From: Tubulanus polymorphus
Lineage: Eukaryota > Animalia > Nemertea
Assembly: GCF_964204645.1 (NCBI RefSeq)
Contig: NC_134034.1
Coordinates: forward strand, 6,174,914-6,238,913
Length of the DNA stretch: 64,000 nt
Direction: 5' to 3'
Both the position numbers and the translations under genes were made by a program. Below the pieces are notes generated by a model. It searched no databases. It worked only from the letters and a program-made list of their open reading frames with translations, and was not told the origin of the DNA. Of this stretch, positions 38,388-62,769 are shown piece by piece. The first letter of the stretch is position 1; each line of letters opens with the position of its first letter.

Positions 38388-39522
38388 TAGCCCACTTGGG
38401 ACTTGTCCCAGCGGGCTATTGCGCTCACTTTTCGCCCGTCGTTCGTCCATCCGTCTGTAGATGGAATCCAGTTATTTTGGGAAGTTTTGAAGACGCTTCA
38501 ATGTAATGTCTTGATATTTTGGTTACACATGTTTCTACCTTAGACACATCTTCAGCCAAAAAACTGGCCCTGTCAGAATCAAGATGGCCGACTGGCAGCC
38601 ATTGTTGTTCGGCAAAATCAGCACTTTTTACACATTTTTGAAGATTTTTTAAGGGAAATTTTGAAAACGCTTTGATCAATTGCCTTGATCTTTCGTATAT
38701 ATTTGAAAACCCCAAGGGCCCATCAGCATAATAAAAATTGGGTCGATCGGACTCAAGATGGCCGTCCTATGACCTTTTTGGTGCCCAAAAATGTCAATTT
38801 TGGCCGGAATTCTGGGTCCTGTTGCTTCCTACTGGTTTGCCATTTCTCATTGCAATTTGTGGTGGGTATCCTTTGGAAAAGGATGTTTTATGCCCGAGAC
38901 AGGTATTTTTGATCAGCCAATTATGACACAATTGGCGGCAATCTTGGTGTCATCAGTAATCATTCGTAGGTTGGGAAAAGTTTTTCGATATTATATTGAT
39001 ACCTAAGCACATTGTGTTACTACTATCAATTGGAAAGTTGTAGCCCATAATGTGTTCTATGATTGTGGTGAGTTTCAAGGTCATAGGTTTTTGTATATGG
39101 CCACCAGGGGGCGTTGAATAATACAATAGCTTAGTATTTCTTTATTATATTTGTACCCATGCATATTTTGTTACCACAATCAATTCCAAAGTTGTAGCTC
39201 ATGTCATCGTCTATGATTGTGGTGAGTTTTAAGGACACTAGTTATTCTATATGGTCACCAGGGGGCGTTGAATAGTAGAATAACTTAGTATTTCCTTATT
39301 ATATTGGTAACGATGCATAGGCCTATTTTATTATCACAATCAATTACAAAATCGTAGCTGCTGACATGTTCTATGATTGTGGTGAGTTCTTAAGTCATTG
39401 GTTTTTGTATATGGTCACCAGGGGGCGTTGAATATTGAAATTGTTAGATTGTTGAGCATTTGAAACCACTTCCCAAGTGGAAACTACTTCCCAAGTGGGC
39501 ATGGTGACCCTGGACCCCTAGT
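38388..39522 (+). mobile_element. Helentron-associated non-autonomous element (HINE/DINE-like), family A copy 1, 3 CTCF-motif units
   Basis: 5' TAGCCCACTTGGGAC..GTCCCAGCGGGCTA hairpin, short (CGTC) microsatellite, ~154-bp tandem units, 3' subTIR TCCCAAGTGGGC, stem-loop GGTG(A)CCCTGGACCC, then CTAGT. No TSD. Confidence 0.85.
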
Positions 39523-39667
39523 ATGTCACCAGGGAGCTTTGAATAGCCAGATAACTAATGTTCATATTTTATTGGTACTTATGGGTATTTTGTAACCGCA
39601 ATTTTTCTGATTTTTTTGCTTTTCAAACCACTTTCCAAGGGGGCCTGGTTTCTCTGGACCCCTAGTT
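39523..39667 (+). mobile_element. Degenerate older family-A-related 3' end directly after copy 1
   Basis: Diverged unit (GTCACCAGGGAGC) and diverged terminus TTCAAACCACTTTCCAAGGGGGCCTGGTTTCTCTGGACCCCTAGTT. Confidence 0.7.
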
Positions 39668-39704
39668 CTTTTTGCTTACTCTTTCTACTTAACTTTAACT
39701 ACAG

Positions 39705-39824
39705 GGGTTAAAACGAACACTTTTAGTGATGGATGAAGAAATGCCTCGTACTAAAGAAAGCATCAGTAACAGGATGCTCTTGGCTAAAGAATGCAATCTA
39801 GAAACCTTACTCAAAAAAAATAAG
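39705..39824 (+). CDS. MINDY4: MINDY4 exon 2 (GLKRTLLVMDEEMPRTKESISNRMLLAKECNLETLLKKNK)
   Basis: Polypyrimidine tract + CAG acceptor and AAG|GTAGG donor; 120 nt. Resembles the recalled GLKKT..MDQERPR...SINNR segment. Confidence 0.92.
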
Positions 39825-39996
39825 GTAGGCCTAATGAACCTGAAATTTTTGAATGTCATCCCAAATGCAGATCTAGGAATGTTGTAAGTGGGGGAATCCA
39901 AATGGTAGATTTATAATGAAGTTGGCGCTTTGAAGTTGTATCTGCTGAAGCCGAATATTGAAAGCTGGTGTAACTGGCTGGTTGTTGTATCGGCAG

Positions 39997-40159
39997 GGGA
40001 CCATTCATTTGTTACGTATCCATGAAATTTTACTTTTTCAACCCCCCTCCCCCTGTACTCAAAATCGGCCATTTTTTCATATACATTATGCATTACAGTT
40101 ACGCAATTGCACTTACCCCTCCCCCTCCCCTAATGCGTACGTAATAAATGAATGATCCC
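39997..40159. mobile_element. PIF/Harbinger-type MITE
   Basis: GGGACCATTCATT / AATGAATGATCCC with 3-bp CAG TSD. Confidence 0.75.
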
Positions 40160-40489
40160 CAGGCTGGCTGGGGAACTAGCATTTACACCAGCGGTACAGG
40201 ATTCCATCCATCAGGAACAACAAGGCATTTACACGTACAATCTTAATTGCATCCCGGAATGAGAATGATTATCATAACTTTACATAGTCTTTATATACAG
40301 AATCATGAGAATGATGTGAGAACTTGTCAGACAAGTTGTAGACCTCAGGAGTCACAAACTGACACCTTGTAACATGTTTGAAAGACATTAATTAATTATT
40401 GATGAGCACTGACAATAGTTAATTACTGTGAAAACATATTGATTACGACTTGAAAGCACATATTGACTATATTTATAAGTTATGTCACA

Positions 40490-40499
40490 TTATTATTTA

Positions 40500-40558
<59 letters not shown>

Positions 40559-40575
40559 CATTATTATTATTATTA
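40490..40575. repeat. (TAT)n microsatellite
   Basis: Read directly from the sequence. Confidence 0.97.
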
Positions 40576-41327
40576 TGTTTATGTATTACATGTACGACAT
40601 TACATGATATTACATGTGTTAACTAATGTATATCTGGGTGACAGTGGTGTACAGCATTTTAGAGGAAGAATTGAGGAGTTTTTAGGATCAACTTTGTTGA
40701 TCCTTTTAGAAAGGTCCTGAGAGTAACTTTATGTTAGCTCTTGGTGGCACAAATTGTAACCGCTGGATATAAACAGCAGATATTTTGTCATTAGGAGGGA
40801 AATAGGTGTTGGAATTGACATGGAGACTTTCATCCATCAACTCAGCCGTTTGGAAGAATTGGGAGAAAATATCAGTGAATTTTTCTCCATTCTACTAATT
40901 GATGCTGGACCTTGTTTCTGGATGATACCATCACGGGAAAAGCCCTTCAGAATAGCATCGCGAAAAAATCGATTTTTGTGCTTAAAAGTATAATGTACTC
41001 AGTTGATCCTACTGGAGCCATGGCCCTTTATTTTGCTGTTACGATAGTACGTATATTGCAAAAACTCACAAAACATGTGACTGACATCCAAAATCTAATA
41101 ACGATATGCAATAGATTTTAAGCCATTTAGTACATGCATGAAGTACATGTTGATTCTACTGGACCCATGGTCTTTAATTGCTGCATTTGGTCTGCTGGGA
41201 TCCGTTTTCCCCAAGTGGGATTCCAAAGGAATTATGCTCCTGTGACCCTTGACTTAATGGAGCACAAGTGGGATTTAGCATCAGCACCTAACATCTAATT
41301 CAAAACTGTGTTTAATTTTGTCTTAAG

Positions 41328-41583
41328 GAACAGCCTGCACCATACAGAGCTATGCTTGAAGTAATGACCAAGGATTTCGCAGGACACAATAGGCAATCAG
41401 GAAGCAGTAACATTGTACCAACACCTGGATCTTGCTGTATTTCTCAGGAGGCTTTTTCCTCTCTACATTCAAATCCCTCGGACAGCAGATTATCTCCATC
41501 ATCAACCCAGAACCTTCAACAACACTACAGCCGCAGTAAATATCTGACTCCTTTGGATTCTGAGAATGGTAGAGTGAATGCAG
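41328..41583 (+). CDS. MINDY4: MINDY4 exon 3 (EQPAPYRAMLEVMTKDFAG...low-complexity linker)
   Basis: TTTTGTCTTAAG acceptor and open frame; P..(A/T)xLE(V/L) similarity to MINDY4. Donor is either after 41583 (G|GTCAAT) or after 41568 (G|GTAGAG), both phase 1. Confidence 0.75.
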
Positions 41584-42030
41584 GTCAATAAGGTCACAAT
41601 TTGTAAGATAAAATAATACAACCCTTTCACTGCCAAAATACATCAGGTTGAAATTTTTCCACCTCAGTTCAGTGCGTTAAGAACGTACCAATATTCTATT
41701 TACCTCGTAGTATGGTGAATCATATTATTGGTATATCGATACACCACTCCACTGGGTAGATGCTATGTAATGCTGGTAATTTATGCAGCGCATAGCATGT
41801 AGACACAGTGAAAGGGTTTTGTAGCGAGACACATTTAATATTTAAGAATTACTGCATTTTTTCTTGCACAAATTCAACAGTTATTGAAAAAAATGTGTAC
41901 TGTCAATTATTCAGTACCATTCACACACAGCTTTCATTGACCTTTTTGATATATGTTTTAGAGATGCTAGTTTACACATGCTTATCTGCACTGTTATCTG
42001 TGTTACGTATGCTTATCTGCACTGTGTAAA

Positions 42031-42490
42031 CCAATTAGTACTCAAGCCGCCCGTATATCTGGCCTGCCTATTACTCCTCAAGCCGCCCGAATCCGCCCCA
42101 GTACTTTTTTCGTAGGCTGCACTAAAACGGTTATAGTGGGATTCAAACCCAATAGCTTATGATAACCTACACACCTAAGTCCTAGAAATACCAAACAGAA
42201 ATCAACATGCTCCTATCGAATTTAAACATGACACATCTGGGCCTCCCTTCAAAACCAAGTAAGTTTGGATGAGATTCGGGGGGCCAAAAGGACACAATTT
42301 TGGTGGCCCACCTCATCAAATCTTATATCATATGAAAGCCTTTATTATTTACTACATAATAACACTAGCTTGTAATGCATGGAAATAAACAGCAAATGAG
42401 CTATTCAGTATCGTGATGATCTTGGATTTTACCTTGAATTTTCTGAGGAGTAATTGACACTACATAGTGCAATTCCTGAGTGCGAATGGG
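42031..42490 (+). mobile_element. piggyBac-type MITE, second family, copy 1
   Basis: CCAATTAGTACTC ... GAGTGCGAATGGG|TTAA; inverted homolog of 42953-43343. Confidence 0.72.
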
Positions 42491-42494
42491 TTAA

Positions 42495-42782
42495 CCCTTT
42501 CAGTGCTGACTAATTAATACCCTATAGTGCTGGAGAAAATTTGAAAATTCTAAAAAATTCCACCCTAGTGTGTTGAACAATGGGAATACCACTATAGTGC
42601 GTCTACACCACAGTGCGGTGTATCGTTAGTTACTAGTATTTCACTATGTTTGACACTTGCTGCCATTTTTCAATAGAGATAATTACAAATTACTAATTAC
42701 ATCAATACACCGCAGTGCGGTGTACTAGCAAAATCCATCACTGATTTATACACCGCACTGCGGTGTAGACGCACTGAGAGGG
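42495..42782. mobile_element. piggyBac-type MITE
   Basis: TTAA|CCCTTTCAGTGC ... GCACTGAGAGGG|TTAA; internal ACACCGCAGTGCGGTGT palindromes. Confidence 0.88.
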
Positions 42783-42952
42783 TTAACCTATTCAACACGA
42801 AAAGCCTTTCAATTCGTGCCAGAAAAATGGAGCTATGAACATAGGCCTAATGCTGACTATTTCATGCCAGAATTGCATTATTGCAACTTCCGCGCGTTGT
42901 TGCATTGATTTTTGAGATACAAGGTTTGATGGTATTATGCCCTTATAGTTTA

Positions 42953-43343
42953 CCCATTAGCACTCACTACGTAGAATTTATTATCCTCAGAAAATTCGAG
43001 GGATGATACAAGTTGTCACAATACCTAATAGCTTATTTGCTGTTTATTTCCATGCGTTACAAGTTCGTGTTATTTTGTAGTAACTAGTCGAGGCTTTCAT
43101 ATGGTATAAGTTCCTTGTAGCCCCTGAAATTCATCCAAACCTACTTGGGTGTCATGTTCCTACTCTAAATACTTGAGAATTTCAAATAGGAAGATGTCGA
43201 TTTCTGTAGGGTATTTTGAGGACTTGAGTGTCTAGTTAATCATAAGCTATTTGGGTTCAAATCCCACTATAACTGTTTTTGTTCAGCAGATGAGAAAAGG
43301 AGTAATAGGCAGGGCGGATATGGGCTGCTTGAGTGCTAATGGG
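42953..43343 (-). mobile_element. piggyBac-type MITE, second family, copy 2
   Basis: TIR CCCATTAGCACTC / GAGTGCTAATGGG with degenerate TTAA flanks. Confidence 0.75.
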
Positions 43344-43539
43344 TTGACGTGTGAGTGGGTTCAACAAGAATATTCAACATTCTTACTAAATTACTATTAG
43401 AAATTTTATAACAAAATACAATTTAATGATAAGATATTCATTTTCCGTATACTAGCGCTCTTTTTGAAGGTAGTGTTTTGTCTACTAAGGGTTATGACAA
43501 GGGTGTTAAATAAGCAATTATCGATTGGCTGATGGCATA

Positions 43540-43747
43540 GGGGCTGTGCATTAGGAACGTGCGTCCGTAAGGGAGGGTTAGAAATTTGTACACAAATTCT
43601 GAAAAAGGCACTTTTACAAGGGGGGAGGGGTTCATTCGTAAAAGTATGTACGCAAGGTGAGTTATAGAACAATGTACAGGGCGCGTACATGAGTATGGGA
43701 GTTCAACATACGCAGAGGTCAAGACTACATACTTTATGCACGGCCCC
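43540..43747. mobile_element. PIF/Harbinger-type MITE
   Basis: GGGGCTGTGCAT / ATGCACGGCCCC with TA-containing flanks. Confidence 0.72.
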
Positions 43748-44010
43748 TAAGGCACTGCGGCAATTGCAACATGGCATTGATAATAGATTATTATTACTTA
43801 AAATTAGGGAATGAAAAGAATGACAGATGAACCAAATGGAACTGTTATTACACTCTCCAAAATCATCCTATCCCATGGCTTAGTACGTTGGTTGTACTCC
43901 CTAACTCCCTTAGTTTTAGATTACTGTAAGTTTTCATAATAAAGAGGAGGCTTCATGATAGCTTATGTTTACCATATTTAATGTTGGTCTATTTGTATTC
44001 AATTTTGTAG

Positions 44011-44186
44011 GTAAAGACTTAGTGTTAGAAGATGCTGATAATGATGGTGAAACAGTTTTGGGAGCTGGACGTCAATCAAACCAATACATCCAAGATTGTG
44101 ATATATACATTCCTGCCACAAAAGCGTCTCGTAATAAAAAGAGTGCCATTTCATCAACTGGTGGTCTGATCACTAGTAATTTAGAT
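44011..44186 (+). CDS. MINDY4: MINDY4 exon 4 (GKDLVLEDADNDGETVLGAG...GGLITSNLD)
   Basis: TTTTGTAG acceptor and GAT|GTAAGT donor. Phase 1 in and phase 0 out fit both neighbours. Confidence 0.75.
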
Positions 44187-45078
44187 GTAAGTAGATGTAG
44201 TTTTGCCGACGATGTATTAGTACATAGCCGTTGACGTATCTTTGTACCGACGGCTTCAAAATGCCACCTATTAAATTTCTTAAAGAAGCCGTTGACAATT
44301 TCAATTACTGACACCAGATTTTGTAATCAAAATTCTGTAAAAATTCTGAAAAGTTTGACATGAAATCGAAAGTTACAGCAGCTGATGCCTCAACTGTATC
44401 CCGTACGGTGCTGCCACCTTGCAAAATTCCTGTGCTAGGACCAACATCTATTGCTGCCACCTAACAAAAACAACTGCTATAAACATGAATTTTGATCTGA
44501 ATTTTTAAACTTCCAATACATGTAGGCCCAATATTCATTCCTTCAGTAGTTTAATTTAATAGTTATGCGCAGTGCCATATTCTATCTTTGAGAAATTACA
44601 GATTATTAGAATATAACTATGCTATAAGTTCTTTCAATGATTTAGTAATCAATTATTCAATTTCAATCACATATTATGAAATGACCCAACTCTGATGATT
44701 TCATTTTTAGTGTATAATTTTTACAGATATTGTTGACAATATTATGATTGATTTGATGTACATTTAAATGTTTAAGTCAAGTAACGAAATAACATTAACA
44801 TCATATAGAATTAGTTTTCATTGTTCATGGAATACATTATTAACCGGGTATTGTTTTCAAGATAGGCACTTGCTGTGGTGATTTCTCAAAGCAACTTGCT
44901 GTGGATGACAAATTCTGAAATTCAAACCCTGAGTCAATGGAATATAGCTAGACTAGGTCAAGATACCATCCAATATGTCCGCCTTGTGGCCATCTTTAAT
45001 TCTGAAATTATACATATTGTGCCTTTATTTAGCATCTGACTGAACGTGTATAGATGCGTTCGCATCTTGTTGGTTTGT

Positions 45079-46495
45079 TAGCCCACTTGGGACTTTAGTC
45101 CCAGCGGGCTATTGCGTTCACTTTTCAACCGTCGTCCGTCCGTCCGTAGATGGAATCCAGTTATTTTGGGAAGTTTTGAAGACGCTTCAAGGTAATGTCT
45201 TGATATTTGGTTTATACATGTATCTACCCTAGACACATCTTCAGGCCAAAAACTGGCCCTATCAGATTCAAGATGGCCGACTGGCAGCCATTGTTGTTCG
45301 CCAAAATCAACACTTTTTACACGTTGTTACAAAATTTTGAGGGAAATTTTGAAGACACTTTTATCAATAACCTTGATTGTTTGTGTATATTTGTACCTCC
45401 CAAGGGCCCATCAACATAAGAAAATTTGGGTCGATCGGACTCAAGATGGCCGTCCTATGACCTTTTTAGTGCCCAAAAATGTCAATTTTGGCCCAAATTC
45501 TGAGTCCTGTGGCTTCCTACTGGTTTGCCATTTCTCATTGCAATTTGTGATGGGTATTCTTTGGAATGGGATGTTTTATACCTGAGACATGTATTTTGAT
45601 CAGCCAATTATGGCGCAATTGGCAACCATCTTGGCGTCATCAGTACTCATTCGTAGGTGGGAAAAAGTTTTTCCACATTATATTGATACCTAAGCATATG
45701 GTGTTACCACAATGTATTGGAAAGTTGTAGCTCATAACATTTTCTATGATTTTGGTGAGTTTCAAGGTCATTGGTTTTTGTTTATGGCCACCAGGGGGCA
45801 TTGAATAATACAAAAACTTAGTATTTCTATATTATATTTGTACCTACACATATTTTGTTACCACAATCAATTACAAAGTTGTAGCTCATGACATCGTTTA
45901 TGATTGTGGTGAGTTTCGAGGACATAAGTTATTCTATATGGTCACCAGGGGCGTTGAATAGTAGAAGAACTTGGTATTTCCTTAGTAGATTGGTACCTAG
46001 GGATATTTTGTTACCACAATCAATTACAAAGTTGTAGCTCATGACATCGTCTATGATTGTGGTGAGTTTTAAGGACATAAGTGATTCTATATGGTCACCA
46101 GGGGGCGTTGAATAGTAGAAGAACTTGGTATTTCCTTATTAGATTGGTACCTAGAGATATTTGGTTAACATGATCAATTGCAAAGTTGTAGATCATGACA
46201 TGTTCTATGATTGTGGTGAGTTTCAAGGTCATTGGATTTTGCATATGGTCACCAGGGGGCATTGAATAGTAGATTAATAACATAGTATTTCCATATTAAA
46301 TTGGTAACGAGGCATATTTTGTTATCACAATCAATTACAAAGTCGTAGCTGCTGACATGTTCTATGGTTGTGGTGAGTTTCCAGGTCATTGGTTTTTGTA
46401 TATGGTCACCAGGGGCGTTGAATATTGAAATTGTTAGATTGTTGAGCATTTGAAACCACTTTCCAAGTGGGCATGGTGTCCCTGGACCCCTAGTT
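45079..46495 (+). mobile_element. Helentron family A copy 2, 5 tandem units
   Basis: Same termini as copy 1 and T-rich flanks. CCAGG anchors at 45791, 45945, 46098, 46252, 46409. Confidence 0.88.
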
Positions 46496-46580
46496 ATTTG
46501 TTGATTTTCCACATTCCTTTGTTAACCACCTTTTTGGTTTACCTTTGTTAGGGATATTAAAGTTGGCATTGAGCACATTA

Positions 46581-47170
46581 CCGTAAAAACCGGCGTATAA
46601 GTCGAGTTTTTAACCCTTGATTTTACCACTTAATTATTGACCTCGACTTATACGCCGAGTACAGTTTTCTACTAAGTATTTTCAGGTCACAAGAAATATT
46701 GATTCTACCAGACAAAAAAGACAGTGTTCATCTTCTCACTGCTATAACAGTTTCATTAATTATTCATGATAAATAAATTTATTTAATGAAAAAAAACTTC
46801 TTTCATTTTGACACAGCTTCATTAAAAACGATGTATTCATATATGCGCGCTCATAGCAGCACTTAATACATTAGGCTATAAATAGCGTGTGACTCACACT
46901 ACTGTATCACTGTATGGTAGTGTATTATACCTGAGTGTGTGTGTAACAGTCTATTGATTAACGCACTGCAGCAATCAGGCTGACGCGCGGCGGCGTGCCT
47001 GAAGGCGCACATCGTTATCAAAACAAACTATTTAATATGATACAAGTAATTATTCTTCTAAGAGAAGGGACTCGACTTATAAGCCGGATATATGTTAAAA
47101 TCATGAAATGTAGGTCTAAAAATTGACCTCGACTTATACGCCGCGTAGACTTATACGCCGGTTTTTACGG
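46581..47170. mobile_element. Tc1/mariner (pogo-type) MITE
   Basis: Perfect 23-bp TIR CCGTAAAAACCGGCGTATAAGTC and TA TSD. Confidence 0.9.
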
Positions 47171-47221
47171 TATGTAAAATCACTTAATTGTCAAGACTCA
47201 ATATTTAGCCACCCTCTGATT

Positions 47222-47900
47222 TGTGAAATCATATGAATTTTTAGGTTAGCCGTAGGCTGAGCCTATTACTATACAAATGGAGGGAATTTGAATGACATGG
47301 TTTCCAGAGCAAAGGCTCTTTGACTGTGCAACTGAGCATATATTCATACAAATCATTCATTAGAGCATTATCCATTCTCCAACCCCTATGAAGCTGAATT
47401 TTGAAAAAGGGCGTCGTTAAAATTTATATGTGCTTTTTCGCGAAAATCTGAACGCAAAAATATCTGTTTTAAATAGCCAATCAGAAAGCAAAGACTCCTC
47501 TGTGATTGGCTCAGCTGCAGAGATCAGTAGGTGTTCACATGAACCCGCGGTATCGTCTACCGTTTGACTTCCGGGTTTTATTTTAAGATCTAAAATTGCA
47601 TTTCAAGATCGATTTCTGTGAAACCTTTAGTTGACTTGGTTTTTTTGGAAGGGATATTTTTGTTAGCACTACAGAAAATATCATTGACATTTATGCAAAG
47701 TCCGGGAAAATAGCTTTTCTCAATTCGGATGGATGACCTTGATATGCTAATTAGCCATGTGCTCAAACTGCAAATTCAATCAAATTTTAATTTCCCAAAA
47801 TATATCAAATCCAATTCAGTTTTACTTTATCACACAAATTAAATACCAAATCCAATTCAATTTTGTTTTATCAAGCAAACTTCAGAAAATTAAATTCTAT
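47222..47900 (+). repeat. Interspersed repeat family B; second copy at ~63163-63750 is cut by the Gypsy LTR
   Basis: Colinear over ~550 bp from ACATGGTTTCCAGAG. The 5' hairpin AGGTTAGCC-GTA-GGCTGAGCCT in a T run is Helentron-like. Confidence 0.8.
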
Positions 47901-49567
47901 TCCACATTTAAATCGATAAGACCAAGGGAAAAGATTTATCTGAGGTATTTGTTCCTTCCAGCTCCAGTCGCTGTCTGTGCTACTTATGAAAACACGATTG
48001 TAATGTGGAAATTATGGGTATTGTCATACGTAAGATGAAATAAAATAATTGAACTTTGAATTCACAAATTAAAATGATTTTTCATAAGCAATGCCCTTGC
48101 CAACAAACAGGCTCCAGTTTTCAAGGTACACAACACTTTGCCCATGGGCAATTTATTTTCTTTTTTTTTCCTGTACTTATTTTGTATTGGGTGAGGGGGA
48201 TGTTGATATCAGTTTGAGCCTGTTGGATATTTTCAAAGAAATTCCGTGATAAATATTCCGGTATATTTTTGTTATTAAGTATGACATCCATTGGGCACCC
48301 TGCAGATTGGTGGTAGGTTGTAAATATGACGATAAGCTGATTGTACTATTGTTCGTCAAAAGATCATTATTTACAGTAGGCATTCCACCGGCAGAAGTAA
48401 TGGTTTCCATGCCAATGTTTTGTAAACATACCTGAGTATATTGCTTATCAGAGGTTATATAGCCATTGAATTTTGCCGGTTGCGACTTTTCTGTAGGATT
48501 GTATGGGGATTTCCTTTTTTCCACACTTAAACACTGATCCTGGAAGTGTGAAGGCATCGTAATATAGAATTTTAGATTTTTCTCGGTAGCTCAGCACAAT
48601 CGTGATCGATAGTGCATGCACAGTCTCGAACTTCAGTTATTCAGAATCCAGTTATTTTGAGAAGTGTTGAAGCTGTAAAAACCAGTATAAATTATTAGGC
48701 AAGCTAAAAATTCAACCCCAATTATACCACTCATTGACTTCGATTTAGGATCTTCTATCAAAGTCGCAAGAAATATTGATGACTAAGTCAAAGTTTGATT
48801 ACATATTCCACGAAACAAACAAGGCACTTTGATATATAAAGTTTATTTTGTTTAAAAAAGCTTTTCATTTAAACACTGAAATAATGCCAGCGCACCAGCA
48901 TGTGTAGCATACACAGCGTTAGCCTATTCTGCATTCCCGCTAAGTGACCACACTGCACACAGTATACGGAGATCGTAGTCCGAAAATCTTCTAACTATTC
49001 TTAAGTAATTAAAATGACAAAGTGTGTTTAGTAGAGCTTTTGATTTTATTACCGTGCTGGGTCTGCTAGTTTTAGTTGTTTTATGTCATAGTCTCACGGG
49101 ATCAAAATTATGAACATTTGTTAATTCTAAAATTCCCATAATCAATCTTGGGTACATATCACTCTAGAACCATCGTTCTTCTGCTGGTGAATATTGTTTT
49201 TCTGTTCGACTTGGTCAATTGTAAGACTAGCTATAGGCCCTCAGGTTACTGCTAGAAGTTGGCCTTAAGGTTCAGTGCGTGAACGGCTTCAAAACACCCA
49301 TGTTGAATCATGGATGTCAAGCTTGTACCCCGTGTACTGCTTGCTCCATTGGCCATGGCAAGTATACATAATGACGTTTCACCCTGATAGTATGGATTAA
49401 ACATGCATCGCATCGACATAGTTATTTCCATTCTCGTTTCAAGTTCAAAGTCAATATGCCAAAACCCATTATGGAAGGTTTCTTTCTGCATGTATATGTT
49501 CACCAATTGAATAGCCGTATAACTTAAGTATTTTCATGTTTTATTAGAACCTAGGCATATTTTATTA

Positions 49568-50124
49568 GTTTAAGGTTAAGTTTAGTTTAAGTTTATTTTA
49601 TTGCTCCACAAAATTGTACAAGTTTGCACAGAGCACAGTAGTACTGCAAAATAGAAATGTAAAGGCGGAAGTTATAGAGGTTAACCCTTTCGGACATGAA
49701 ACATCATCTTATATTATCTTCATCGTGATATTAGGAAGATTATGCTTCATGACCCAAAGGGTAAAAAAATTGGCAGGTATTAATCAAATTAATCATATCA
49801 ATTGTATTAATCGTTCAGCCAGTGATGACAGAACTTTCAACACACATATTATGGTTTATGTTTAAACATAGCATGCTAAACCTTTTTTTATGAATACTGC
49901 TACTTTTGAAGTTTCAGCAGAGTTAAGCAATCTGCTGAGCTGGCCTGGACCAGCCCTCTGGAAGCGGGGATGGATATACTTATTCCTAAGTTCATGAAAG
50001 AAAAGGCAATAAAGTAAAAAATGTTCCTCGTCGCCAAGGGTTTGAATTTCACATTTCGTGCAATGACGTTCTTCCCAATTAATTCGGTTATATCTCCCAA
50101 CTTCGATTGGTAATTTATGATTAA
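49568..50124 (-). mobile_element. RTE-X-like LINE 3' fragment
   Basis: NHKLPIEVGRY...RHCTKC...GDEEHFLLYC zinc-finger C-terminus. The 3' motif TTTATTGCTCCACAAAATT..TTTGCACAGAGCACA is shared with 28452; TAAAC-type tail. Confidence 0.8.
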
Positions 50125-51485: not shown

Positions 51486-52057
51486 GTAAGCACAATAATC
51501 TTTAATCCTTTGCTATTATACATAGTCATGTAGGTTTTCTGCATGTTAATGCTGTAGTCAATTCAGTATTTATTGTTTTATTATCAGATGCAGTTATTGA
51601 TCTACAAGATCCTCAAACTGGTTCCAAATTTCTTTTTCACATGCATCTCACACATAGCTCTATCTGATCCATGAAGTAGTAACTACTGCTGCATGAAAGG
51701 TTTATGCTCTGCATACCTAGTGAAATTTCAAGCACGCTCTTTGTCTTTAGATTATAAGCTGAATGAAACCCCTGGTCCATCTAAATACAATTCCAAGAAA
51801 AAACATTGCTAGCCTTCATACATAACATACTCCTTTAGGCTGAAATGTAAGCTTACCTTTGTAAGCTGTGAAAATCAGTGAGAATGTGTAAATTTTTACT
51901 TACCGTATATACTCGCGTAAAAGTTGACCTAGGATTTTGGCCTAAGAAGATTTTTCATGTAATCCATGTAAAAGTGGGGCTCAGTTTTAGAGTATCATAA
52001 ATAATATAGAAATCAATATAATTTTTGTGACCAAATCTCAGAAATGAACCGACTGCT

Positions 52058-52512
52058 CAGGCGCGGATCCAGGGCCATTCGGTGACTACAGCACAGTGAA
52101 AAAAGGGCACCAACTTTGAAAAGGGCCAGTATTAATGCCCAACGAGCGAATTTGAGTTTGAACGCCATTTATTGGTATCATGCCACTAAATTTGTATTCA
52201 CATTCAATTTGCATGAACCTTTTTTAAGATTTTTGGCGAAATTTTCCCTTTTCCAATTAGATTTTTAGAGCAACATAATGTCTCTTTTAGAATAGTGCCC
52301 TTTTGAGTAAAGGAAAATGCCTTAGATTGCCTTTTTAGATTTTGGGCAATTTATTTTCATTCACATTTTGCTTTAGTCCTAATACAGAAAGGTAATTATT
52401 TTTTATCACAAATTGTTATTTACTGTTTACCCGAAACATAAATTTTTCAAGGGCATTTGAAATCTGCGACTACCGCACGTGCTGCATGTGCGATAGTCTG
52501 GATCCGCGCCTG
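52058..52512. mobile_element. MITE with CAGGCGCGGATCCAG TIRs and 5-bp TSD
   Basis: Perfect 15-bp TIRs with CTGCT on both flanks. Related ends at ~6380-6432, 31293, 34247-34261 and 37798-38130. Confidence 0.85.
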
Positions 52513-52999
52513 CTGCTGTGCAAGCGAGTGTTGCACTTTATAATCTGGCGCTGGTTTAATAGGCTGGTATCTGGTATTAAGGTTAACCTGAGGTCTATCT
52601 CAAATTAATTTTAAATTGAGTAAACCCCCAGTTAAAATTCAATATTAGTCTATGAAACTGGGCCCGGGTTTCTTGCTCTTCCAATGGTCTTCGATGCCCA
52701 ATTAGTGAACATTATGAGACATAATTGTTAGTGCTCTAGACACTTGATATGAGGTAGCTATCCCTAAAAAGCCAACAAGGTGAACATCTTGAATTTCTCA
52801 TTAGTGCTCTACACACATCAAATTATGTGCATTTTCTTTTTAACTCGTTAGGTGTTATGAGGTTGGCACACTCATTATACTGATTGAAAAAGGGGTCATG
52901 AAGAGGTTTTTGAAATATGGCTAAAAGTAATTTTTATCATCAATTATAACCTAGTTAATGGTTAGTGGTCAAGAAATTTATTTAGCATTCTTCAATTAC

Positions 53000-54469
53000 T
53001 GTAAAAAGGAGACTTTTGATCGACAGATGAGTTTTTGATGAGTTTTCCGTCGTCTTTAGTCAGAAGGTTGCACGAATTCGTGATGATCTTGATTGCTCTG
53101 GAAATGAGACTGTCGCAGAATCGAGCTGTTTAGTTATGCAGCCTATCAAACAATTCGCACTCACTTCGGATGACAAACTTAAACGTCTGGTTATGTCTCT
53201 ACCTGCCAAGAGTTGTGAACTAGACGTATAGGCCCCACTCCGCGCGGTTGCGCCACCGCGCAGTATTTACGCGAAGCAGCAGAACACAAACATGGCCACT
53301 CTCTCAATTTTCAATGATAGAAATCGGGTGTGCATTTCAATTATTTCGGCTGTTAGGGTTTTAAGGCACAATATAAGTTGATGATGTGATATGGCGATGT
53401 TAATCAATCATAATTCCGCAGTGAAGCTAGTCACGAACGGTGCCGATTAAGTGTACAGCTGCCAAAAGTACTGAAATGTGCGTAGTTGCGTAACTATTTG
53501 CAGTGAATTGCAGACGAAACATGAAGCCTTAACGGCCGTTAAAAAAAAATTATACCAATCGCAATTGTAAAATAAAAATGAGATAGAACCTAAGTTAAAA
53601 TTCTGGCCATTTCTAAAATGTTATTACTAATTTTTAGTCAGTGTGGAAAGTTTAGTTTTCCAACAATAATGAGGGGTGGTAGGTAGTCATGCAATTCAAG
53701 TCATCATTTATTACACGTTACTTCCGTGTTGTTGAAAATCTCGCGAGTCCTGGACCAAACCCCAATGAACAATGTGATCTGCACTACCCATTACACACTC
53801 CAGTACCCACAGCTTTTATATATCCATCCAAATATTTAGTGTCTTTCTTCCTGGATCCAATTCCTACCAGTCTACTTAAGGAATGTATTGAACCACTTTT
53901 ACCGGTACTAGTTCGTATAACTAACATGTCCATTACCAGTGGACATGTACCCATAGTACTTAAACACGCGATTGTTAAACCTCTTCTTAAGAAAACTAAT
54001 CTCAACAAAGAGGAACTGTCTAACTATCGACCAGTTTTTAACTTGAGTTTCCTTTCGAAGTTGGTTGAACGCATAATAGCTGCCCGACTGAGGAGGCATA
54101 TGGAGCTTAATGTACTGTATGATCCCCATCAATCAGCCTATCGCTGTGGGCATAGCACTGAAACTGCCCTTCTTAAAGTTTCTGACTTCATAATGTCAGC
54201 ATTAGATAATGGTCATGAGGCTTTGTTGGTCCTTCTGGATTTATCGGCTGCATTTGATACCGTTGACCATCAGATTCTATTACAAAGACTTCATGCGCGA
54301 ATGGGAATATGTGATGGTGCTTTGTCTTGGTTTAGATCGTATCTACACGGGAGGAGTTATTCACTTTGTGTTAAATGAGAACTGTCTACAGTTGTATAGA
54401 AGGCATTATGTGGAGACAGCGCACTGAGCATGGAAACACGGATTCTGCGCTATACAAGCTCTTATTATT
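53000..54469 (+). mobile_element. L2/CR1-group LINE fragment (RT), interrupted at 53225-53855 and internally deleted
   Basis: KSCEL|DPIPTSLLKEC...NYRPV.NL.FLSKLVE...QSAYR..HSTETALL...LDLSAAFDTVDH. L2-type 3' tail AGCGCACTGAGC..GCGCTATACAAG..TATTATT. The 5' boundary is approximate. Confidence 0.88.
53220..53855. mobile_element. TIR-less element with CT(A/G)GA terminal direct repeats, copy 1
   Basis: Splits the L2 LDP codons; highly similar to 54824-55505; GC-rich hairpin near the left end. Confidence 0.8.
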
Positions 54470-54823
54470 TGACAGTGCTGATTTAATCCCAACCCGGAAG
54501 TGTGACGTCATTCTGAGAACTCAGACAAAAACCACATGGTGTAGTGTATAGAAACGGGTGTTACTAACAGTGATTAAAATGCAAAATAGTGACTCAAATA
54601 CATCTGATTCCAATCAAAAGTTTATGAAGCAGTTGTTATTAATTGACTGATTTGGACCTGACGCCTCAAAACGAAGAAATTTGGGACTATAGTGGAACCT
54701 CGTTCTAACGAACCCCTGCGGGAAAAATAATAAGATGGTAATATCGGATAGTTCGTTAGATCCGTTTCATATCATTTATGTATGAAAAGAGAACACCCCC
54801 TGGTGTGATGAAACACGAACCAA

Positions 54824-55505
54824 CTGGACGTATCGGCCCCACTCCGCGCGGTGGCACCACCCTGCGGGATTTACGCGAAGCAGCAGAACACAAACACGGC
54901 CACTCTCTCAATTTTCAATGATAGAAATCGTGTCTGCGTTTCAATTATATCGGCTGTTAGGGTTTTAAGACACAATATAAGTTGATGATGTGATATGGCG
55001 ATGTTGATTAATGATAATTCCGCAGTGAAGCTAGTCACGAACGGTGCCGATTGAGTGTACAGCTGCCAAAAACACTGAAATGTGCGTAGTTGCGTAACTA
55101 TTTGCAGTGAATTGCAGACGAAACATGAAGCCTTAACGGCCGTTTGAAAAAAAAATTATACCAAATCGCAATTGTAAAATAAAAATGAGATAGAACCTAA
55201 GTTAAAATTCTGGCCATTTCTAAAATGTTATTAATTATTATTACTAATTTTTAGTCAGTGCGGAACGTTTAGTTTTCCAACAATAATGAGGGGTGGTAGG
55301 TAGTCATGCAATTCAAGTCATCATTTATTACACGTTACTTCCGTGTTGTTGAAAATCTCGCGAGTCCTGGACTAAACCCCAATGAACAATGTGATCTGTG
55401 TGCTGGCCACAAATGCACACAGATCACACTACACTACCCATTACACACTCCAGTACCCACAGCTTTCATATATCCATCCAAATATTTAGTGGCTTTCTTC
55501 CTGGA
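54824..55505. mobile_element. TIR-less element with CTGGA terminal direct repeats, copy 2
   Basis: CTGGA at 54824 and 55501; carries an extra 33-bp internal hairpin segment relative to copy 1. Confidence 0.8.
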
Positions 55506-56272
55506 TTGGAGTAGACCTACTATTAAAGTATAAATACTGACAGCTAATAAATCACTTATTGAGAACTGTAAACTATGAAATGAAATATAAATTTAAACCA
55601 AATTCAGAGATTCTCTCTGTTAACTTTGAGTGGCAAATACATGTATTGGACACATGAGTCCCTCCCAAAGGATGCAATGGAATGAGATCAAGGAAATGAA
55701 TGTAACAATGCTATGCCAGTTAAAATGTCAGAACAATTTTAAAACTTCAGAGCGTTTAGTCCCTATTTCAGTTTCTCAGATGGATCGTGTTGCGTAGTAC
55801 GTTTTCATTAAGCATGTGTGCAGATCACTGTTAACGGGCTGAAACAATGACCAACTACCATATTACAAATTGTAGCAGCCAGCAACACGTTAATCTGTAT
55901 CACTAATCTCAGGTAAATAAAGCAACTCTGTCTCTCGGTTTGAAACTGACAATAAATAAACAAGTGTGATTGATCGTGGCTTAGCGATCATTAGAACCGA
56001 TGAAAATATGTAATAGGACTCCAAAACTAAGGTCGTTATAACCGAAAGTTTGTTAGAAAAGGGGTTGTTTCCGATAAAATATAACTGTAAATGAGAAGGA
56101 TTTGGCCGTAAACTTGTTCGTGTAGTATTCCAGCCAAGCCTGCGCCGACCCATGTAATTGGAATGTGCTGCATACATTCGTAGCCAGCCAGTATGTTGTA
56201 TATACTACAGCTTAAGTGGGTCACCGGGGAAAGCCAGTACTATATGCGCAGTGAAAGCGCGTATCTCTTTTT

Positions 56273-57390
56273 TAGCCCACTTGGGACTTAAGTCCCAGCG
56301 GGCTATTGCGTTCAATTTTCGTCCGTCCATCCGTAGACGGAATCCAGTTATTTTGGGAAGTTTTGAAGACGCTTCAAGGTAATGTCTTGATATTTGGTTT
56401 ATACATGTATCTACCCTGGACACATCTTCAGCCCAAAAACTGGTCCTGTCAGAATCAAGATGGCCGACTGGCAGCCATTGTTGTTCGCCAAAATCAACAC
56501 TTTTTACACGTTTTTACAACTTTTTGAGGGAAATTTTGAAGACGCCTTGATCAATTACCTTGATCTTTCGTATATAGGGCCTATTTGAATCCCCCACGGC
56601 CCATCAGCATAACAAAAATTGGGTAGATCAGACTCAAGATGGTCATCCTAGGACCTTTTAAGTGCCCAAAAATATCAATTTTGGCCCGAATTCTGAGTCC
56701 TGTAGTTTCCTACTGGTTTGCCATTTCTCATTGGATTTGCTGATGGGTATTCTTTGGAAAGGGATGTTTTATACCTGAGACAGGTATTTTTGATCAGCCA
56801 TTTATGACGCAATTGGCGGCCATCTTGGTGTCATTAATACTCATTCGTAGGTGGGAAAAAGTTTTTTAACATTATATTGATACCGAAGCATATTTTGTTA
56901 CAACAATGAATTATACAGTTGTAGCTTATAGCGTGTTCTATGATTGTGGTGAGTTTCAAGTTCATTGGTTATTATATATGGCCACCAGGGGGCGTTGAAT
57001 TATACAATATCGTAATATTTCTATATTATATTTGTACCAATACCTATTTTGTTACCACAATCAATTGCAAAGTTGTAGCTCATGACATTGTCTATGATTG
57101 TGGCGAGTTTTAAGGGAATAAGTTATTCTATATGGTCACCAGGGGGGATTGAAGAGTAGAATAACTTTGTAATATTTTAATATTTCCATATTAAATTGGT
57201 AACGAGGCATATTTTGTTATCACAATCAATTACAAAATCGTAGTTGCTGACATGTTTTATGATTGTGGTGAGTTTCAAGGTCATTGGTTTTTGTATATGG
57301 TCACCAGGGGGCGTTGAATATTGAAATTGTTAGATTGTTGAGCATTTGAAACCACTTCCCAAGTGGGCATGGTGTCCCTGGACCCCTAGT
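56273..57390 (+). mobile_element. Helentron family A copy 3, 3 tandem units
   Basis: Same termini; inserted in a T run (TTTTT|TAGCCC ... CTAGT|TT). Confidence 0.88.
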
Positions 57391-58366
57391 TTACTAAGTA
57401 TTGAATTCGCGGGAGTAGCATCAGTTGGCAGAATGAAAGGCTCTCAGATAATGAAAACATAAGTTTTGTGTATCTGAGTTTATATCTGCCGTCATATTTG
57501 CGAGAATCCTTCTCTAAAGTGCGAAGCTAGTTTACACGTAGGCTGGATGTTTTTCCTTTTAGTCTTCTTACGGTCCATTATCTTAAGCACCGAAATCTGT
57601 GGTTTTGTCTCTGCTTTTGTGGGAAGAGTTCATAGCTACACACAGCCAAGTCATTTCAAAAATTGGCGCTATATTCGACAAAAATGAGCATTGTATTATA
57701 ACGCTTCTGAGTGTGCTGCAGGCGATGTGTGCTCAGAATGACTTCATCAATATCACCGTGCAAACACGAGCAACCCGTTGCTAGGGCTTTTGCTACGGGC
57801 TTTTCTTGAGTTTGGATAATGTTTTTACTAAAAGATTAGATTTAAAGATTTTTTTCAAAACCTCTTCATGACCCCTTTTAGTCAATCACTCTTCCAATAT
57901 GGTTTCCATGGCAGACATCCAGAGATAGGTTTTTTACTAGCAAATATTGGGAAACTGATGTTTGATTCTTATACAGTACTACAGTAGAACTCGCTTAATT
58001 TTTCCTTCAGACTTTTAAATGAATATTATGAAAACTGGACTCGAGAGAACAACACCTTAGGTCCTCTAGTTTGTTCTTGTCAAAAGAGGAGTTGAATATT
58101 AACAAACAGTAGGCCCTAATCCCATCGCTACAGCATAAGTATAAATAAGAGCAGTGTTGCCTCTGCCTCTGCCACTCTGCCTCTGCCGCTTCTCTGGGCA
58201 GCCACCTTTGAATGTAATATCGTCTTGATACTAGCTTGCACCAACTAATTACACTACTATCTATACTAAGATGTATGTTATCCACATCCATTGATGCTTA
58301 TTGCTGTTTTATCTGGGATGTACTGTACTGTGTGCCTTTCACATGAATAAAACATTTAATTTTCAG

Positions 58367-58483
58367 GATTTGAAAATGGTGATATTTGGCTCAGCTAATC
58401 AAACATTTAATGATGAATGGCGATATCAAAGTTTAGTCTTCTTGGATTTACCACACCTCTCATATGGCATACTTCAGAAAAAG
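58367..58483 (+). CDS. MINDY4: MINDY4 exon 6, start of MINDY domain (DLKMVIFGSANQTFNDEWRYQSLVFLDLPHLSYGILQKK)
   Basis: TTTTCAG acceptor and AAG|GTTAGT donor; 117 nt. FG...FN.EW..QS..F......YGI.Q.K is the segment just before the GGPCG catalytic motif, which I did not find in the window. The six exons sum to 1413 nt in frame. Confidence 0.93.
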
Positions 58484-60296
58484 GTTAGTGCTATACATTT
58501 TCTAGTCCTTTCTGTAATCATATGGTATTTGATTTTGTGTGTACGTTCATTTATCAAAAATGGAAAGTACAAATAAGTCATCGGTTGTTGGCTGATATCT
58601 ATGTAATGAATTTAATGATTATGAAGGTATGTTAAGAAAGAAGTGGTTTTTAATGGTCGAAGACCATAGGCACGGTCTCTAGTAAGATTCTGCCTTTCAC
58701 CGAACAACACCTGTAGTATAGCTACTGCCATGGATATAGTCCCATAATGAATACAGAACTGATAATCCGACAAAAAATTGTCCCTAACGCGTCATTTGCC
58801 TTTATCCATGATCCTAGCTATGACTACCATAGCCTGTTGTACTTAGGTTCCCAAAATCGTAATGAATTATGGAAAGTTTTAAGTGGCATGAAGGGCCTAC
58901 CTGTCAGTGAATTGTCTATATCGGTTTTACCCGGCAATGAAGTGTTATCCCCATCATTATCCTCACAGGTGCTCGCGCACAGATACATTTGTAAGTAGTT
59001 CATGGAAACTGCGCAGTTCATGGTTTACACTGACTGGGAGTGGATCGTTAGGGTTGTCTCTGCAGGGTTTGTCAGTGGCTAGCCCAGATTTTATGTAATC
59101 TTGAGAGCACTGCAAGTGAGGGATTTTTTACCTTGAGTGAGTAAGCACATGTAGTAGGCTAGAGACAGCAGTGCTGTGTACACACAGCCAGATAAGCGGC
59201 TGCATCTTGCCTTGTGTGAACACAGGCTGTCTCAGATTGACTGACGAAAAATAAGCTGTTTGGTGCGTGTAGTGGAAAAAAGATATAAATATAGCTGCAT
59301 AGCAGCGATAACGGGTTTCTGCCTAAATGGTTCATATGTCGAACTGGGAAGCGTTTCATCGAAATAATTCTAGCCCAAAACATTTGACTATTGCCAAGAA
59401 ACGCAACATGATGCAACATTATGCTGGATATGTGGATATCAGGAGTCCATTTGTCAAAGCATCGAAGTATAATACAGTTCAACTTGTTTATGTCTCAGAT
59501 GGAGCGCGCGGGGCAGGGTTGTCATTGTATTGCTGACTTATCCAAATTACACTTACACAACGCAACGTTTTTCAGTGTGTAAACTCCGTCGTACTCTGCG
59601 TTACAGGACAGTGAGGAATTGTATTTTAGCCACCTGAGCCCTTGGCTTGATTCGAGCAAAAGATCTTAAATGACTTCACAGAATTTGATTATAATTCTAG
59701 AATTTTTGAAGAATGCTTTCTCTGGAATACGTACTCCTGAATACATTAGTAAAAAATTAGTCCGTCGTAGCGTTCGTCCGTCCGTAGACAAAATCCAGTT
59801 ATTTTGGATTCTCAGATTCAAGTTGGCCAACTGGCAGCCATTGTTGTTCGCCAATATCAGCACTTTTTACACATTTTCGAAGTTTTCGAGGGAAATTTCG
59901 AAGACGCTTTGATCAATTACCTTGATCTTTCGTCTATATTTGAATCTACCAACGGCCCATCCGCATAAGAACAATTGGATCGATCTGACTCAAGATGGCC
60001 GTCCTACGACCTTTTTAGTGCCCAAACATGTCAATTTTGGCCAGAATTCTAGGTCCTGTAGCTTCCTACTGGTTTGCCATTTCTCATTGCAGTTTGTGAT
60101 GGTTATTCTTTGTAAAGGGATGTTTTATACCTGAGACAGGTATTTTTGATCAGCCAATTATGACACAATTGGTGGCCATCTTGGTGTCATCAGTACTCAT
60201 TCGTAGGTGGGAAAAAGTTTTTCCACATTAAATTGATACCTAAGCATATTGTGTTACTATATTCAATTGGAAAGTTGTAGCCCATAACGTGTTCTA

Positions 60297-61291
60297 CAGA
60301 GATGCTAGTTTTCCGGAAATATCCGGAATTCCGGAAATTTAGGATCGCCGATGTCAATTCCGGAAATTGGGTGAGAATTCTTGCGGCGACCAGTAATGGC
60401 ACGGACTGTAAAAGCGTTCGTTTGCTTGTACTCGTCATCGCTTCTGTGTTATTTTATCTTGGTCTCTGTTTCCGAGGACGTTCTGCTACAATGTATATAC
60501 GTGTGCTTGTTGTGGTATCTGTGCGTGCATAGGCGGAGTGCCACTGTTGTGACTCCATTTCCAATTAATAGTCAAATCTTTACGCGCCGTTGTACATCGT
60601 CCCACTGACGGCCAACAATGTGAAGATGCACGTGGTAATAATTAAGATTATATTTAATAAATATCATCTCAATTATTAGCACGTGCGTGCTATGTCCTGA
60701 GGCACGCAGCTTTGTAACTTTCTTTTTACCTGCAGCTGTCAAGCGGGACGGTCTGCAAAATGAGCACGCACGGAAAGATTGTCAGTCGGGAGTCGGCCGA
60801 TATAAAGGCAATTGACAGCGGTATAAAAAATAAATTTAACTGGCACTGGCTAGAGTATAAGGACAGTAACGGGGACTACTTATCAAACTACATTCGTAAG
60901 TTAGACTTAGCTGGCGTGGCGTACTGCATCGTTTGTAAAGACCAGGTCAAATACGGTAGTGGCGAGAAAAAAGATATTCTTCGTCACCCGGATAGCGCGC
61001 GGCATAAGAAGGCAGCGAGGGGTGTGAAGCACAACGAATGCCTTCCGTCGTATTTTGAGATGGAAGATGCCGATCGTGATACTGCCGCTAGTACATCGAC
61101 ACAAGGAAAAGTATCTGTCCCGTATGGTGCTGCTCCGCATATTGAAAATGTAGTAACAGTTACCGAGACCACCCAGATCGCTCTAGAACGCATCTCCGGC
61201 GGTGCAAAAACGCAAAATTTTTTCTGGGGGAGGGCCTCCAGACCCCCTTTCTAAATTCCGGAATTTTGGTACTTTGGCCCTAGCATCTCTG
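60297..61291 (+). mobile_element. hAT-like deletion derivative with 12-bp TIRs and 6-bp TSD
   Basis: TIRs CAGAGATGCTAG / CTAGCATCTCTG; GTTCTA duplicated relative to the intact host unit; subterminal TTCCGGAA repeats at both ends. Confidence 0.85.
60760..61254 (+). pseudogene. Truncated transposase N-terminus with BED-like zinc finger
   Basis: FNWHWLE...AYCIVC...DILRH...ARH (C2H2) inside the TIR element. No DDE domain; the frame runs into subterminal sequence. Confidence 0.7.
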
Positions 61292-62190
61292 GTTCTATGA
61301 TTTTGAAGAGTGTCAAGGTCATTGGTTTTTGTATGTGGCCACCAGGGGGTGTTGAATAATACAATAAATTAGTATTTCTATATTATGTTTGTACCTATGC
61401 ATATTTTGTTACCACAATCGATTGCAAAGTTGTAGCTCATGACATCTTCCATGATTTTGGTGAGTTTTAAGGACATTAGTTATTCTATATGGTCACCAGG
61501 GGGCGTTGAATAGTAGAATAAGTTAGTATTTCCTTATTAGATTGGTACCTAGGCATATTTTGTTACCATGAACAATTGCAAAGTTGTAGTTCATGACATC
61601 GTCTATGATTGTGGTGAGTTTTTAAGGACATAAATTATTCCATGTAGTCACCAGGGGGCGTTGAATAGTAGAATAGCTTAGTATTTCCTTATTAGATTGG
61701 TACCTAGACATATTTTGTTACCATGATCAATTGCAAAGTTGTAGATCATGACATCGTCTATGATTGTGGTGAGTTTTTAAGGACATTAGTTATTCCATAT
61801 AGTCACCAGGGGGCCTTGAATAGTAGAATAGCTTAGTCCTTATTAGATTGGTACCTAGGCATATTTTGTTACTATGATCAATTGCAAAGTTGTATTTCAT
61901 GACATGTACTACGATTGTGGTGAGTTTGAAGGTCATTGGGTTTTGCATATGGTCAACAGGGGGCATTGAATAGTAGAATAACTTAGTATTTCCATATTAA
62001 ATTGGTAACGAGGCAAATTTTGTTATCACAATCAATTACAAAATCATAGCTGCTGACATGTTCTATGATTGTGGTGGGTTTCAAGGTGATTGGTTTTTGT
62101 ATATGGTCACTAGGGGCGTTATGTATTGAAATTCTAAGATTGTTGAGCATTTGAAACCACTTCCCAAGTGGGCATGGTGTCCCTGGAACC

Positions 62191-62769
62191 CTAGTTTCCC
62201 TTGATGCTGTTGACTTCTTCGTAGCCGTCGTTTGGCATCAGTTTCTTCATTTGTTCGGTTGTCGCCTTATGTGTTCTTGCGATGTCCAGGGCATCGTCAA
62301 TCGTCAGATTCTCTCTCCCGATAAGCTTTTTCTGTACCAGCGGATGCGCTGTCTCTATTATTAACTGTTCAATCAACCTCTCGTCGGTTTTGGCTTGATC
62401 ACAGAACTTGCATTTCGCGGCAACAGTTCGGCATTTCGTGATGAACGCATCTACAGTCTGCACATCACTTTGTCGCAGGCGCTGCAGCTCAAACCCTGAC
62501 AGCCGATGGTTTGTTTTAGGCTCAAGATGGGTCTTGAATTTGTCAAAAATCGTTTCCGGATTTACTGAGTCTTCTGTGGATAGATTCCATGTGTTGTACA
62601 CTCTTCGGCCTTCATGGCATACCCACATTAGCAGATATGTAGCGTGACATTTAGCTGCCTTTTCACTCAACGGGCCTTTAAAAATCAACTCACAGTAATG
62701 TCGAAACTCACTAAAAGCTGTTGAACCCCAGTCCATCACTGGCGGCGTAACTCCACTCAATTCACCCAT
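62191..62769 (-). pseudogene. Ty3/Gypsy Gag fragment
   Basis: Retrotransposon Gag pattern (LLMW..EG..VY, F..HLEP..N, Q....VDAFIT.CR..A.KC.F, LT.D.AL.IAR). It follows a PBS and is cut off by the Helentron end. Confidence 0.85.

Follow-up and report, generated by a model that had tools for sequence, protein, structure and literature searches.

A HINE family of the nemertean Tubulanus polymorphus carries arrays of CTCF-type motifs that decay like the surrounding DNA after insertion

Background

Can a mobile element seed a genome with arrays of insulator sites, and are such sites kept by the host once they are in place? This question is raised by a stretch of 64,000 nucleotides from the nemertean Tubulanus polymorphus (assembly GCF_964204645.1, contig NC_134034.1, positions 6,174,914 to 6,238,913 of the forward strand; the whole stretch is called the window below), in which a repeat with a CTCF-type motif in its central tandem units occurs several times within the gene MINDY4. 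The repeat was confirmed to be a HINE, that is a non-autonomous Helentron derivative, present in about 2,000 copies; the motif belongs to its ancestral unit and decays neutrally after insertion. An earlier note, made from the letters of the window, had proposed a candidate mobile insulator cassette whose dosage depends on the number of units. Such a function found no support, and one of the outcomes that the note itself named as refuting was obtained, namely decay of the motif positions at the rate of the rest of the unit.

The role of CTCF outside vertebrates is an open question (PMC13317027), and spiralian CTCF has barely been studied. The HINE arrays constitute a natural dose series in which it can be asked whether an invertebrate CTCF binds such sites, insulates at them or stays off them.

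Results

Identity, copy number and distribution of the family

Thirty genomic loci share a common plan: a 5' 12-bp subterminal inverted repeat (subTIR) with a nested hairpin, a (GTCC)n microsatellite, a head of ~600 nt, 3–8 units, an inverted subTIR and a terminal CTAG. The subTIRs GCCCACTTGGGA and TCCCAAGTGGGC were present in window copies and in most of the 30 loci. The 5' nested hairpin is strong (-9.9 kcal/mol, z -3.6 and -3.8); the imperfect terminal stem and the 6-bp hairpin overlapping the 3' subTIR are no better than shuffles (z -0.59 and 0.02). From the HINE/DINE-1-like anatomy described previously, the subTIRs, 5' hairpin, microsatellite, array and T-rich target were recovered and the 3' stem-loop turned out to be weak. 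T-rich flanks were seen both at genomic loci and at read loose ends, and no target duplication was apparent when one insertion into a 31-bp minisatellite was set against units that lack it, although these do not make a clean empty site. Among the open reading frames (ORFs) of the window none inside the element was credible. In a second sample both ends of copy 2 were marked by thousands of loose-end reads, which break off abruptly at 45078 and 46495 and have flanks that are heterogeneous but rich in T.

Compared with the HINE/DINE-1-like elements of Thomas et al. 2014 (PMC4067079), the family has the same subTIRs with an inverted repeat nested at the 5' end, a microsatellite and central repeats, likewise enters T-rich targets without duplicating them and has no coding capacity; it differs in its weak 3' stem-loop and in the CTCF motif of its central repeat, which is not described there. 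With oyster Cg_HINE (PMC7492417) it has in common a GTCY-type microsatellite, an 11-12-bp subTIR, copies in non-coding parts of genes, monomers mostly of 140-180 bp and arrays averaging up to about five, whereas the oyster CL1 monomers are without the CTCF core (1 match in ~400 kb). Since units of 140-180 bp, 2-5 per array, are the general oyster HINE pattern (PMC7492417) and CL1 is motif-free, the spacing close to a nucleosome core, read earlier as a CTCF design, is no evidence for one; the same orientation of motifs within an array is explained by tandem duplication.

At least 1,711 5' ends and at least 2,008 3' ends were counted in the genome (267.8 Mb, 77 contigs, about a dozen of them chromosome-sized). 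Seven Rep loci (L046-L050, L052, L053) with the Helentron RGS-P/A-H signature contain open frames of up to 2,009 aa; long Helentron ORFs lie at C3:12.18 Mb, C6:13.63 Mb, C8:2.68 Mb and C8:6.11 Mb. Of the 30 best loci, fourteen (L007, L009, L011-L019, L028-L030, judged by their flanks) represent one insertion in the 31-bp minisatellite, which belongs to a larger repeated element that passively amplified that HINE insertion. Contig C1 (32 Mb) has no exact 5' end before 6 Mb; of the first 100 that were listed, most lie at 12-20 Mb. Among these 100, neighbours less than 10 kb apart had the same orientation in 12 of 13 cases (p 0.003). This suggests that copies hop locally or that pairs in inverted orientation are lost, and it leaves few close convergent pairs. 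T-richness of introns was rejected as a cause of this clustering (TTTT 328 vs AAAA 321).

Scanning the window for the 16-nt core at up to 3 mismatches gave 16 matches, all within five copies of one repeat (Table 1). Three copies are full length and the fragment on the minus strand was found as announced, but the copy near 59760, formerly counted as near full, is truncated, deleted and split; it starts inside the microsatellite and is without 5' subTIR and hairpin. The unit numbers 3, 5, 3, 6 and 2 were confirmed. Tandem Repeats Finder placed 154-bp arrays at 38989, 45666 and 61293 and called 165 bp at 56889, and two motif spacings are 160 and 165 bp. By self-comparison, pairwise identity among the window copies is 85-90 %; their private change is 2.7-5.7 %.

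CTCF-type motifs in the window and in the genome

Motifs were scored with the vertebrate CTCF position weight matrix (PWM; JASPAR MA0139.1, with consistent column sums; maximum 30.7 bits). The exact 16-nt match to the consensus noted at 39098 and 56979 was verified. The scores lie far outside what chance would give, with 25.8 bits for first units (p 9e-10, i.e. ~1e-9) and 20.6 bits for other units (p 7e-8, i.e. 1e-7). Two bases of the element differ from the vertebrate consensus: a T at position 17 and, outside first units, a T at position 4. At 45939, 46403 and 62104 the loss of a single G has brought the motif score below zero; 14 of the 17 motifs in MINDY4 introns are thus intact, all four plus-strand copies being intronic as proposed.

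Genome-wide, 3,391 exact cores of the element were counted, compared to 0 for the reversed control. Native dispersed 14-mers amounted to 864 canonical, 665 with T17, 315 with T4 and 254 with both (reversed controls 7, 8, 12 and 4), that is 26- to 123-fold over the controls depending on the class. The family therefore supplies more than half of the exact-match CTCF-type sites counted (3,391 vs ~2,100 native); native G12 variants of three classes were left out of the ~2,100 and might add ~550, with the family still above half. Native sites are evenly spread on C1, unlike the mid-chromosome HINE copies.

The possibility that the host has no CTCF, as would be the case for a cnidarian, was rejected: its CTCF gene was located at C3:3.43 Mb, and among PDB entries it matches CTCF best (E 1.5e-61). 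The contact residues of zinc finger (ZF) 5 are identical in the alignment and ZF6-ZF7 are insect-like; those of ZF3-ZF4 are conserved by comparison. The conserved specificity assumed earlier is in line with these residues. Since the native motifs accept T4 and T17, the host CTCF likely binds the predicted element motif in vitro.

Two local accumulations of native sites were also seen: one native CTCF-type 14-mer recurs every 16-53 kb on C3:0.41-0.69 Mb, and four native sites fall within 370 bp at C1:31.23 Mb. Both are possibly tandem gene clusters or subtelomeric repeats.

Fate of the motif after insertion

The decay test comprised 150 units from 31 elements, each unit being compared with the consensus of the five nearest units from other elements. 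The sample is biased towards the best BLAST matches of one copy, and 14 of its loci sit in the host repeat that was amplified passively; the outcome was the same for these nested loci as for the free ones. The expectation that the motif would be more conserved than the rest of the unit had to be rejected: non-CpG substitutions affected 38 of 1,668 sites in the motif core and 342 of 14,976 in the remainder, which is 2.28 % in either case (p 1.0). With an observed/expected ratio of 1.03 the window containing the motif ranked 69 among 123 windows. A neighbouring 16-mer is nearly as frequent genome-wide as the motif core (3,190 vs 3,391). By this comparison the test of a host-maintained insulator failed, no purifying selection on the motif being detected after insertion.

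CpG sites changed in 7.4 % of cases in the motif (19/258) and in 5.9 % in the head (40/676), compared to ~2.5 % for other G/C. Since CpG change exceeds that of other G/C and the motif is not spared, the motif CpG appears to be methylated in the germ line without protection. Decay at the rate of the surrounding DNA makes the motifs look like cargo of a selfish element rather than host-maintained insulators.

Recurrence of the core in other HINE families

In an older sub-lineage, ~75 % identical (~25 % diverged), the consensus of 13 units found by a flank-only pattern retains the core. Retention of this core would be expected by chance about 1 time in 13 (hand estimate), so it lends only slight weight.

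Metagenome contigs were scanned for two CTCF cores 142-172 bp apart, a selection for the motif made without a control scan. There were 56 matches, many of them 143-147-bp arrays of 40-46 % GC resembling animal host DNA; GC-rich, short-period matches (e.g. L056, L063, L070, L075, L077, L078, L095, L100, L101) were covered by batch scans only. Clear HINE 5' ends were found at L059, with 146-bp units and the motif backwards, and at L087, with ~161-bp units and the motif forwards, and several further 143-170-bp metagenome arrays contain a CTCF core. Beyond the motif the window unit showed no similarity to the metagenome families (best masked hidden Markov model E 4.1). CTCF cores in the central repeats of HINE families that look unrelated are new: no report of them was found in the literature outside subscription papers, nor anything in the supplements of two other bivalve satellite papers. 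Their presence in such families and in the older sub-lineage suggests a constraint on the element rather than on the host.

At L083 a AAAATGGC core overlaps the CTCF motif, and at L087 there is a similar overlap with ACATGGC. The L055 cluster (14 metagenome contigs) has four CTCF-type motifs within 180 bp and, upstream of them, a further one that is inverted; these are not full tandem units.

Discussion

The explanation that we consider best, with a probability of roughly 0.5, is that of a HINE whose CTCF-type motif would benefit the element itself, the inserted copies being decaying passengers. A Helentron Rep-helicase, presumably resident, would copy the HINE in trans, and the HINE would insert into T-rich DNA without target duplication, carrying its array of 154-bp units with it. 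Host CTCF could bind the unit motif, and the binding would help the element if it left donor copies open to the machinery of the germ line or gave them phased nucleosomes there; this would retain the motif in active master lineages. Inserted copies would decay as passengers, probably often masked in repeat-rich chromatin; masking of mammalian transposable element (TE)-borne CTCF sites by H3K9me3 is reported in PMC9067402. The outcome for the host would be thousands of decoy CTCF sites, a minority of which may be co-opted.

Several observations weigh against a motif that serves the element. At the level of master unit types the motif is not clearly less variable than the rest of the unit, with changes in 6 of its 13 columns compared to 68 of 123 outside it, and one sub-family has C7>T, disfavoured by the CTCF matrix. 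The array itself may be dispensable, as an array-less derivative is indicated by 153 reads joining 45583 to 46429 at ~12-fold unique depth. The oyster CL1 monomers demonstrate that the core is not universal in HINEs, and the motif-selected scan, having no control, establishes recurrence of the core but not its frequency.

It is quite conceivable, at less than even odds, that the resemblance is a coincidence or reflects another binder: the old HINE repeat may contain a GC-rich box that fits the G-rich CTCF matrix by accident or is used by the Helentron's own proteins, any binding of CTCF being irrelevant. Neutral decay and the lack of excess conservation at the master level are what coincidence would predict, G-runs arise easily, and what seems by eye to be the equivalent box of oyster CL1 does not qualify as a CTCF site. 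Moreover, motif orientation varies among HINE families (reversed in L059), and the G12 of the element is a minority native variant (31 of 100 listed). On the other hand, by hand estimate a 150-bp unit would contain an exact 12-bp core by chance with a probability of ~1e-5, and still this core is present both here and in several otherwise dissimilar families, and most shared changes of the motif fall at degenerate matrix positions.

It is improbable that CTCF occupies the inserted arrays and that these shield host genes as insulators, with a strength depending on unit number. The strong motifs, the presence of a host CTCF and the share of more than half of the exact sites would suit such a cassette, and precedents exist in mammalian TE-borne CTCF sites (PMC7786948) and in Helitron-borne HSF-1 sites that recruit genes (PMC8896005). 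It is opposed by the absence of purifying selection and of CpG protection, by 3 of 17 intronic motifs being already broken and by the location of the window copies within introns of one gene. The C1 copies, mid-chromosome and missing from the first 6 Mb, do not follow the evenly spread native sites, and CTCF motif orientation does not define domains in flies and echinoderms (PMC13317027). A recent, still-active family with copies too young for selection to show could be invoked because some copies are only 0.3-1 % from their neighbours. This is highly improbable given the private change of the window copies and the 38 substitutions in 1,668 non-CpG motif sites, which gave power for a ~40 % reduction; in the second sample no empty-site joint of copy 2 was seen among the joints listed, a listing that stops short of 167 others.

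The element can be set beside known systems. It spreads a host motif as do mammalian TEs with CTCF sites (PMC7786948) and C. elegans Helitrons with HSF-1 sites (Garrigues 2019, via PMC8896005). In the mammalian B2 SINE, MER20 and HERV examples (PMC7786948) a mobile family likewise supplies a large share of motifs; the differences here are a rolling-circle DNA element, arrays of 2-8 sites per copy, a spiralian host and the candidate status of the sites. The C. elegans case has in common the spread of regulatory sequence by a Helitron-class element and concerns a different factor. The same spread is seen in Helitron-minisatellite PATC insulators (bioRxiv 10.64898/2026.08.08.743475), where insulation is reportedly mechanical, independent of a protein motif and functionally tested.

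The family more than doubles the number of exact CTCF-type sites in the genome and presents them in arrays of 2-8; caution is needed, as HINE repeats can dominate CTCF-motif counts in spiralian genomes. Shi et al. 2023 (PMID 36827186) reportedly described Helitron-marked sperm chromatin loops in Xenopus tropicalis, linking Helitron-class elements with 3D anchors. The head region of the HINE has AAGATGGC cores, which we take to be YY1-like. A wider generalization appears doubtful to us: that CTCF and YY1-like motifs have come up repeatedly in the central repeats of HINEs and Helentrons throughout bilaterians, rolling-circle elements using architectural proteins of the host to stay active, and that here they supply most strong CTCF sites, bind germ-line CTCF and shape the folding of repeat-rich chromosome centres. 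Should a controlled survey bear out the recurrence among HINE families, it would provide a first function for central repeats, known mainly as seeds of satellite DNA.

Other features of the window

Exons of MINDY4 were located by a search with the host's own 759-aa MINDY4 reference and were not joined into a gene model. Those mapped correspond to codons 1-455 of 759, the remainder lying outside the window, and their positions place all four plus-strand HINE copies in introns, in sense orientation. The best named relatives of the protein are molluscan (43-46 % over the full length). Every window copy and relic is sense to the host gene or the nearest exon.

Table 1. Coordinates of the HINE copies, their parts and associated features in the window
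Feature	Position	Strand	Description
HINE copy 1	38388..39521	+	full length, 3 units, MINDY4 intron 1
Copy 1 motifs	39098..39430	+	at 39098, 39252, 39412; PWM 25.8, 20.6, 20.6 bits
HINE copy 2	45079..46493	+	full length, 5 units, 2 motifs minus one G
5' terminus (copy 2)	45079..45112	+	12-bp subTIR GCCCACTTGGGA, nested inverted repeat, then (GTCC)n microsatellite
Head region (copy 2)	45150..45665	+	two old ~172-bp repeats, 71% identical; usually 2-3 AAGATGGC cores
Central array (copy 2)	45666..46424	+	154-bp units of distinct first, middle and last types, one CTCF-type motif each
3' terminus (copy 2)	46461..46493	+	subTIR TCCCAAGTGGGC with one mismatch, weak stem, CTAG then T
HINE copy 3	56273..57389	+	full length, 3 units
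Copy 3 motifs	56979..57316	+	at 56979, 57133, 57298; PWM 25.8, 12.3, 20.6 bits
HINE copy 4	59761..62194	+	5'-truncated, internal deletion, split by TIR element, 6 units, last motif minus one G
Copy 4 motifs	61336..62122	+	six; PWM 21.7, 20.6, 18.6, 13.4, 15.1, -4.4 bits
Terminal inverted repeat (TIR) element, 995 bp	60297..61291	+	in unit 1 of copy 4; 12-bp TIR CAGAGATGCTAG
3' HINE fragment	19785-19528	-	2 units; same strand as DCAKD exon, downstream of the exon; fused to 20-bp-repeat element
Relic 3' piece	39523..39665	+	older sub-lineage; ends ~37 bp before MINDY4 exon 2 acceptor, directly preceding the pyrimidine tract
Relic unit	50097..50305	+	older sub-lineage, ~75% identical; motif at 50206, 11.6 bits
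MINDY4, six exons	35189..58483	+	35189-35254, 39702-39824, 41325-41567, 44013-44186, ~50808-51503, 58367-58483

The TIR element within copy 4 has a 6-bp target duplication (GTTCTA). Its ORF of 164 aa contains a CxxC...H pattern resembling a zinc finger and has no Pfam match; the element is possibly a hAT-group derivative. A retrotransposon gag fragment adjoins the end of copy 4 (62191-62769, minus strand), a reverse-transcriptase fragment lies within a MINDY4 intron (53689-54378, plus strand), and at 27080-31139 stretches of 1.3 kb (95 %) and 0.6 kb (98 %) are duplicated in tandem and contain an internal repeat of 108-109 bp.

Another family of short repeats, made up of 20-bp units in which ACGTGAAGGATAA is found, occurs at 13412-13625 (+), 14124-14373 (-) and 19783-20005. 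Two of its copies form an inverted pair ~500 bp apart, and the family has at its end a CTCF-type motif of invertebrate type, at 13551 and 14199, scoring 11.4 and 15.8 bits, respectively.

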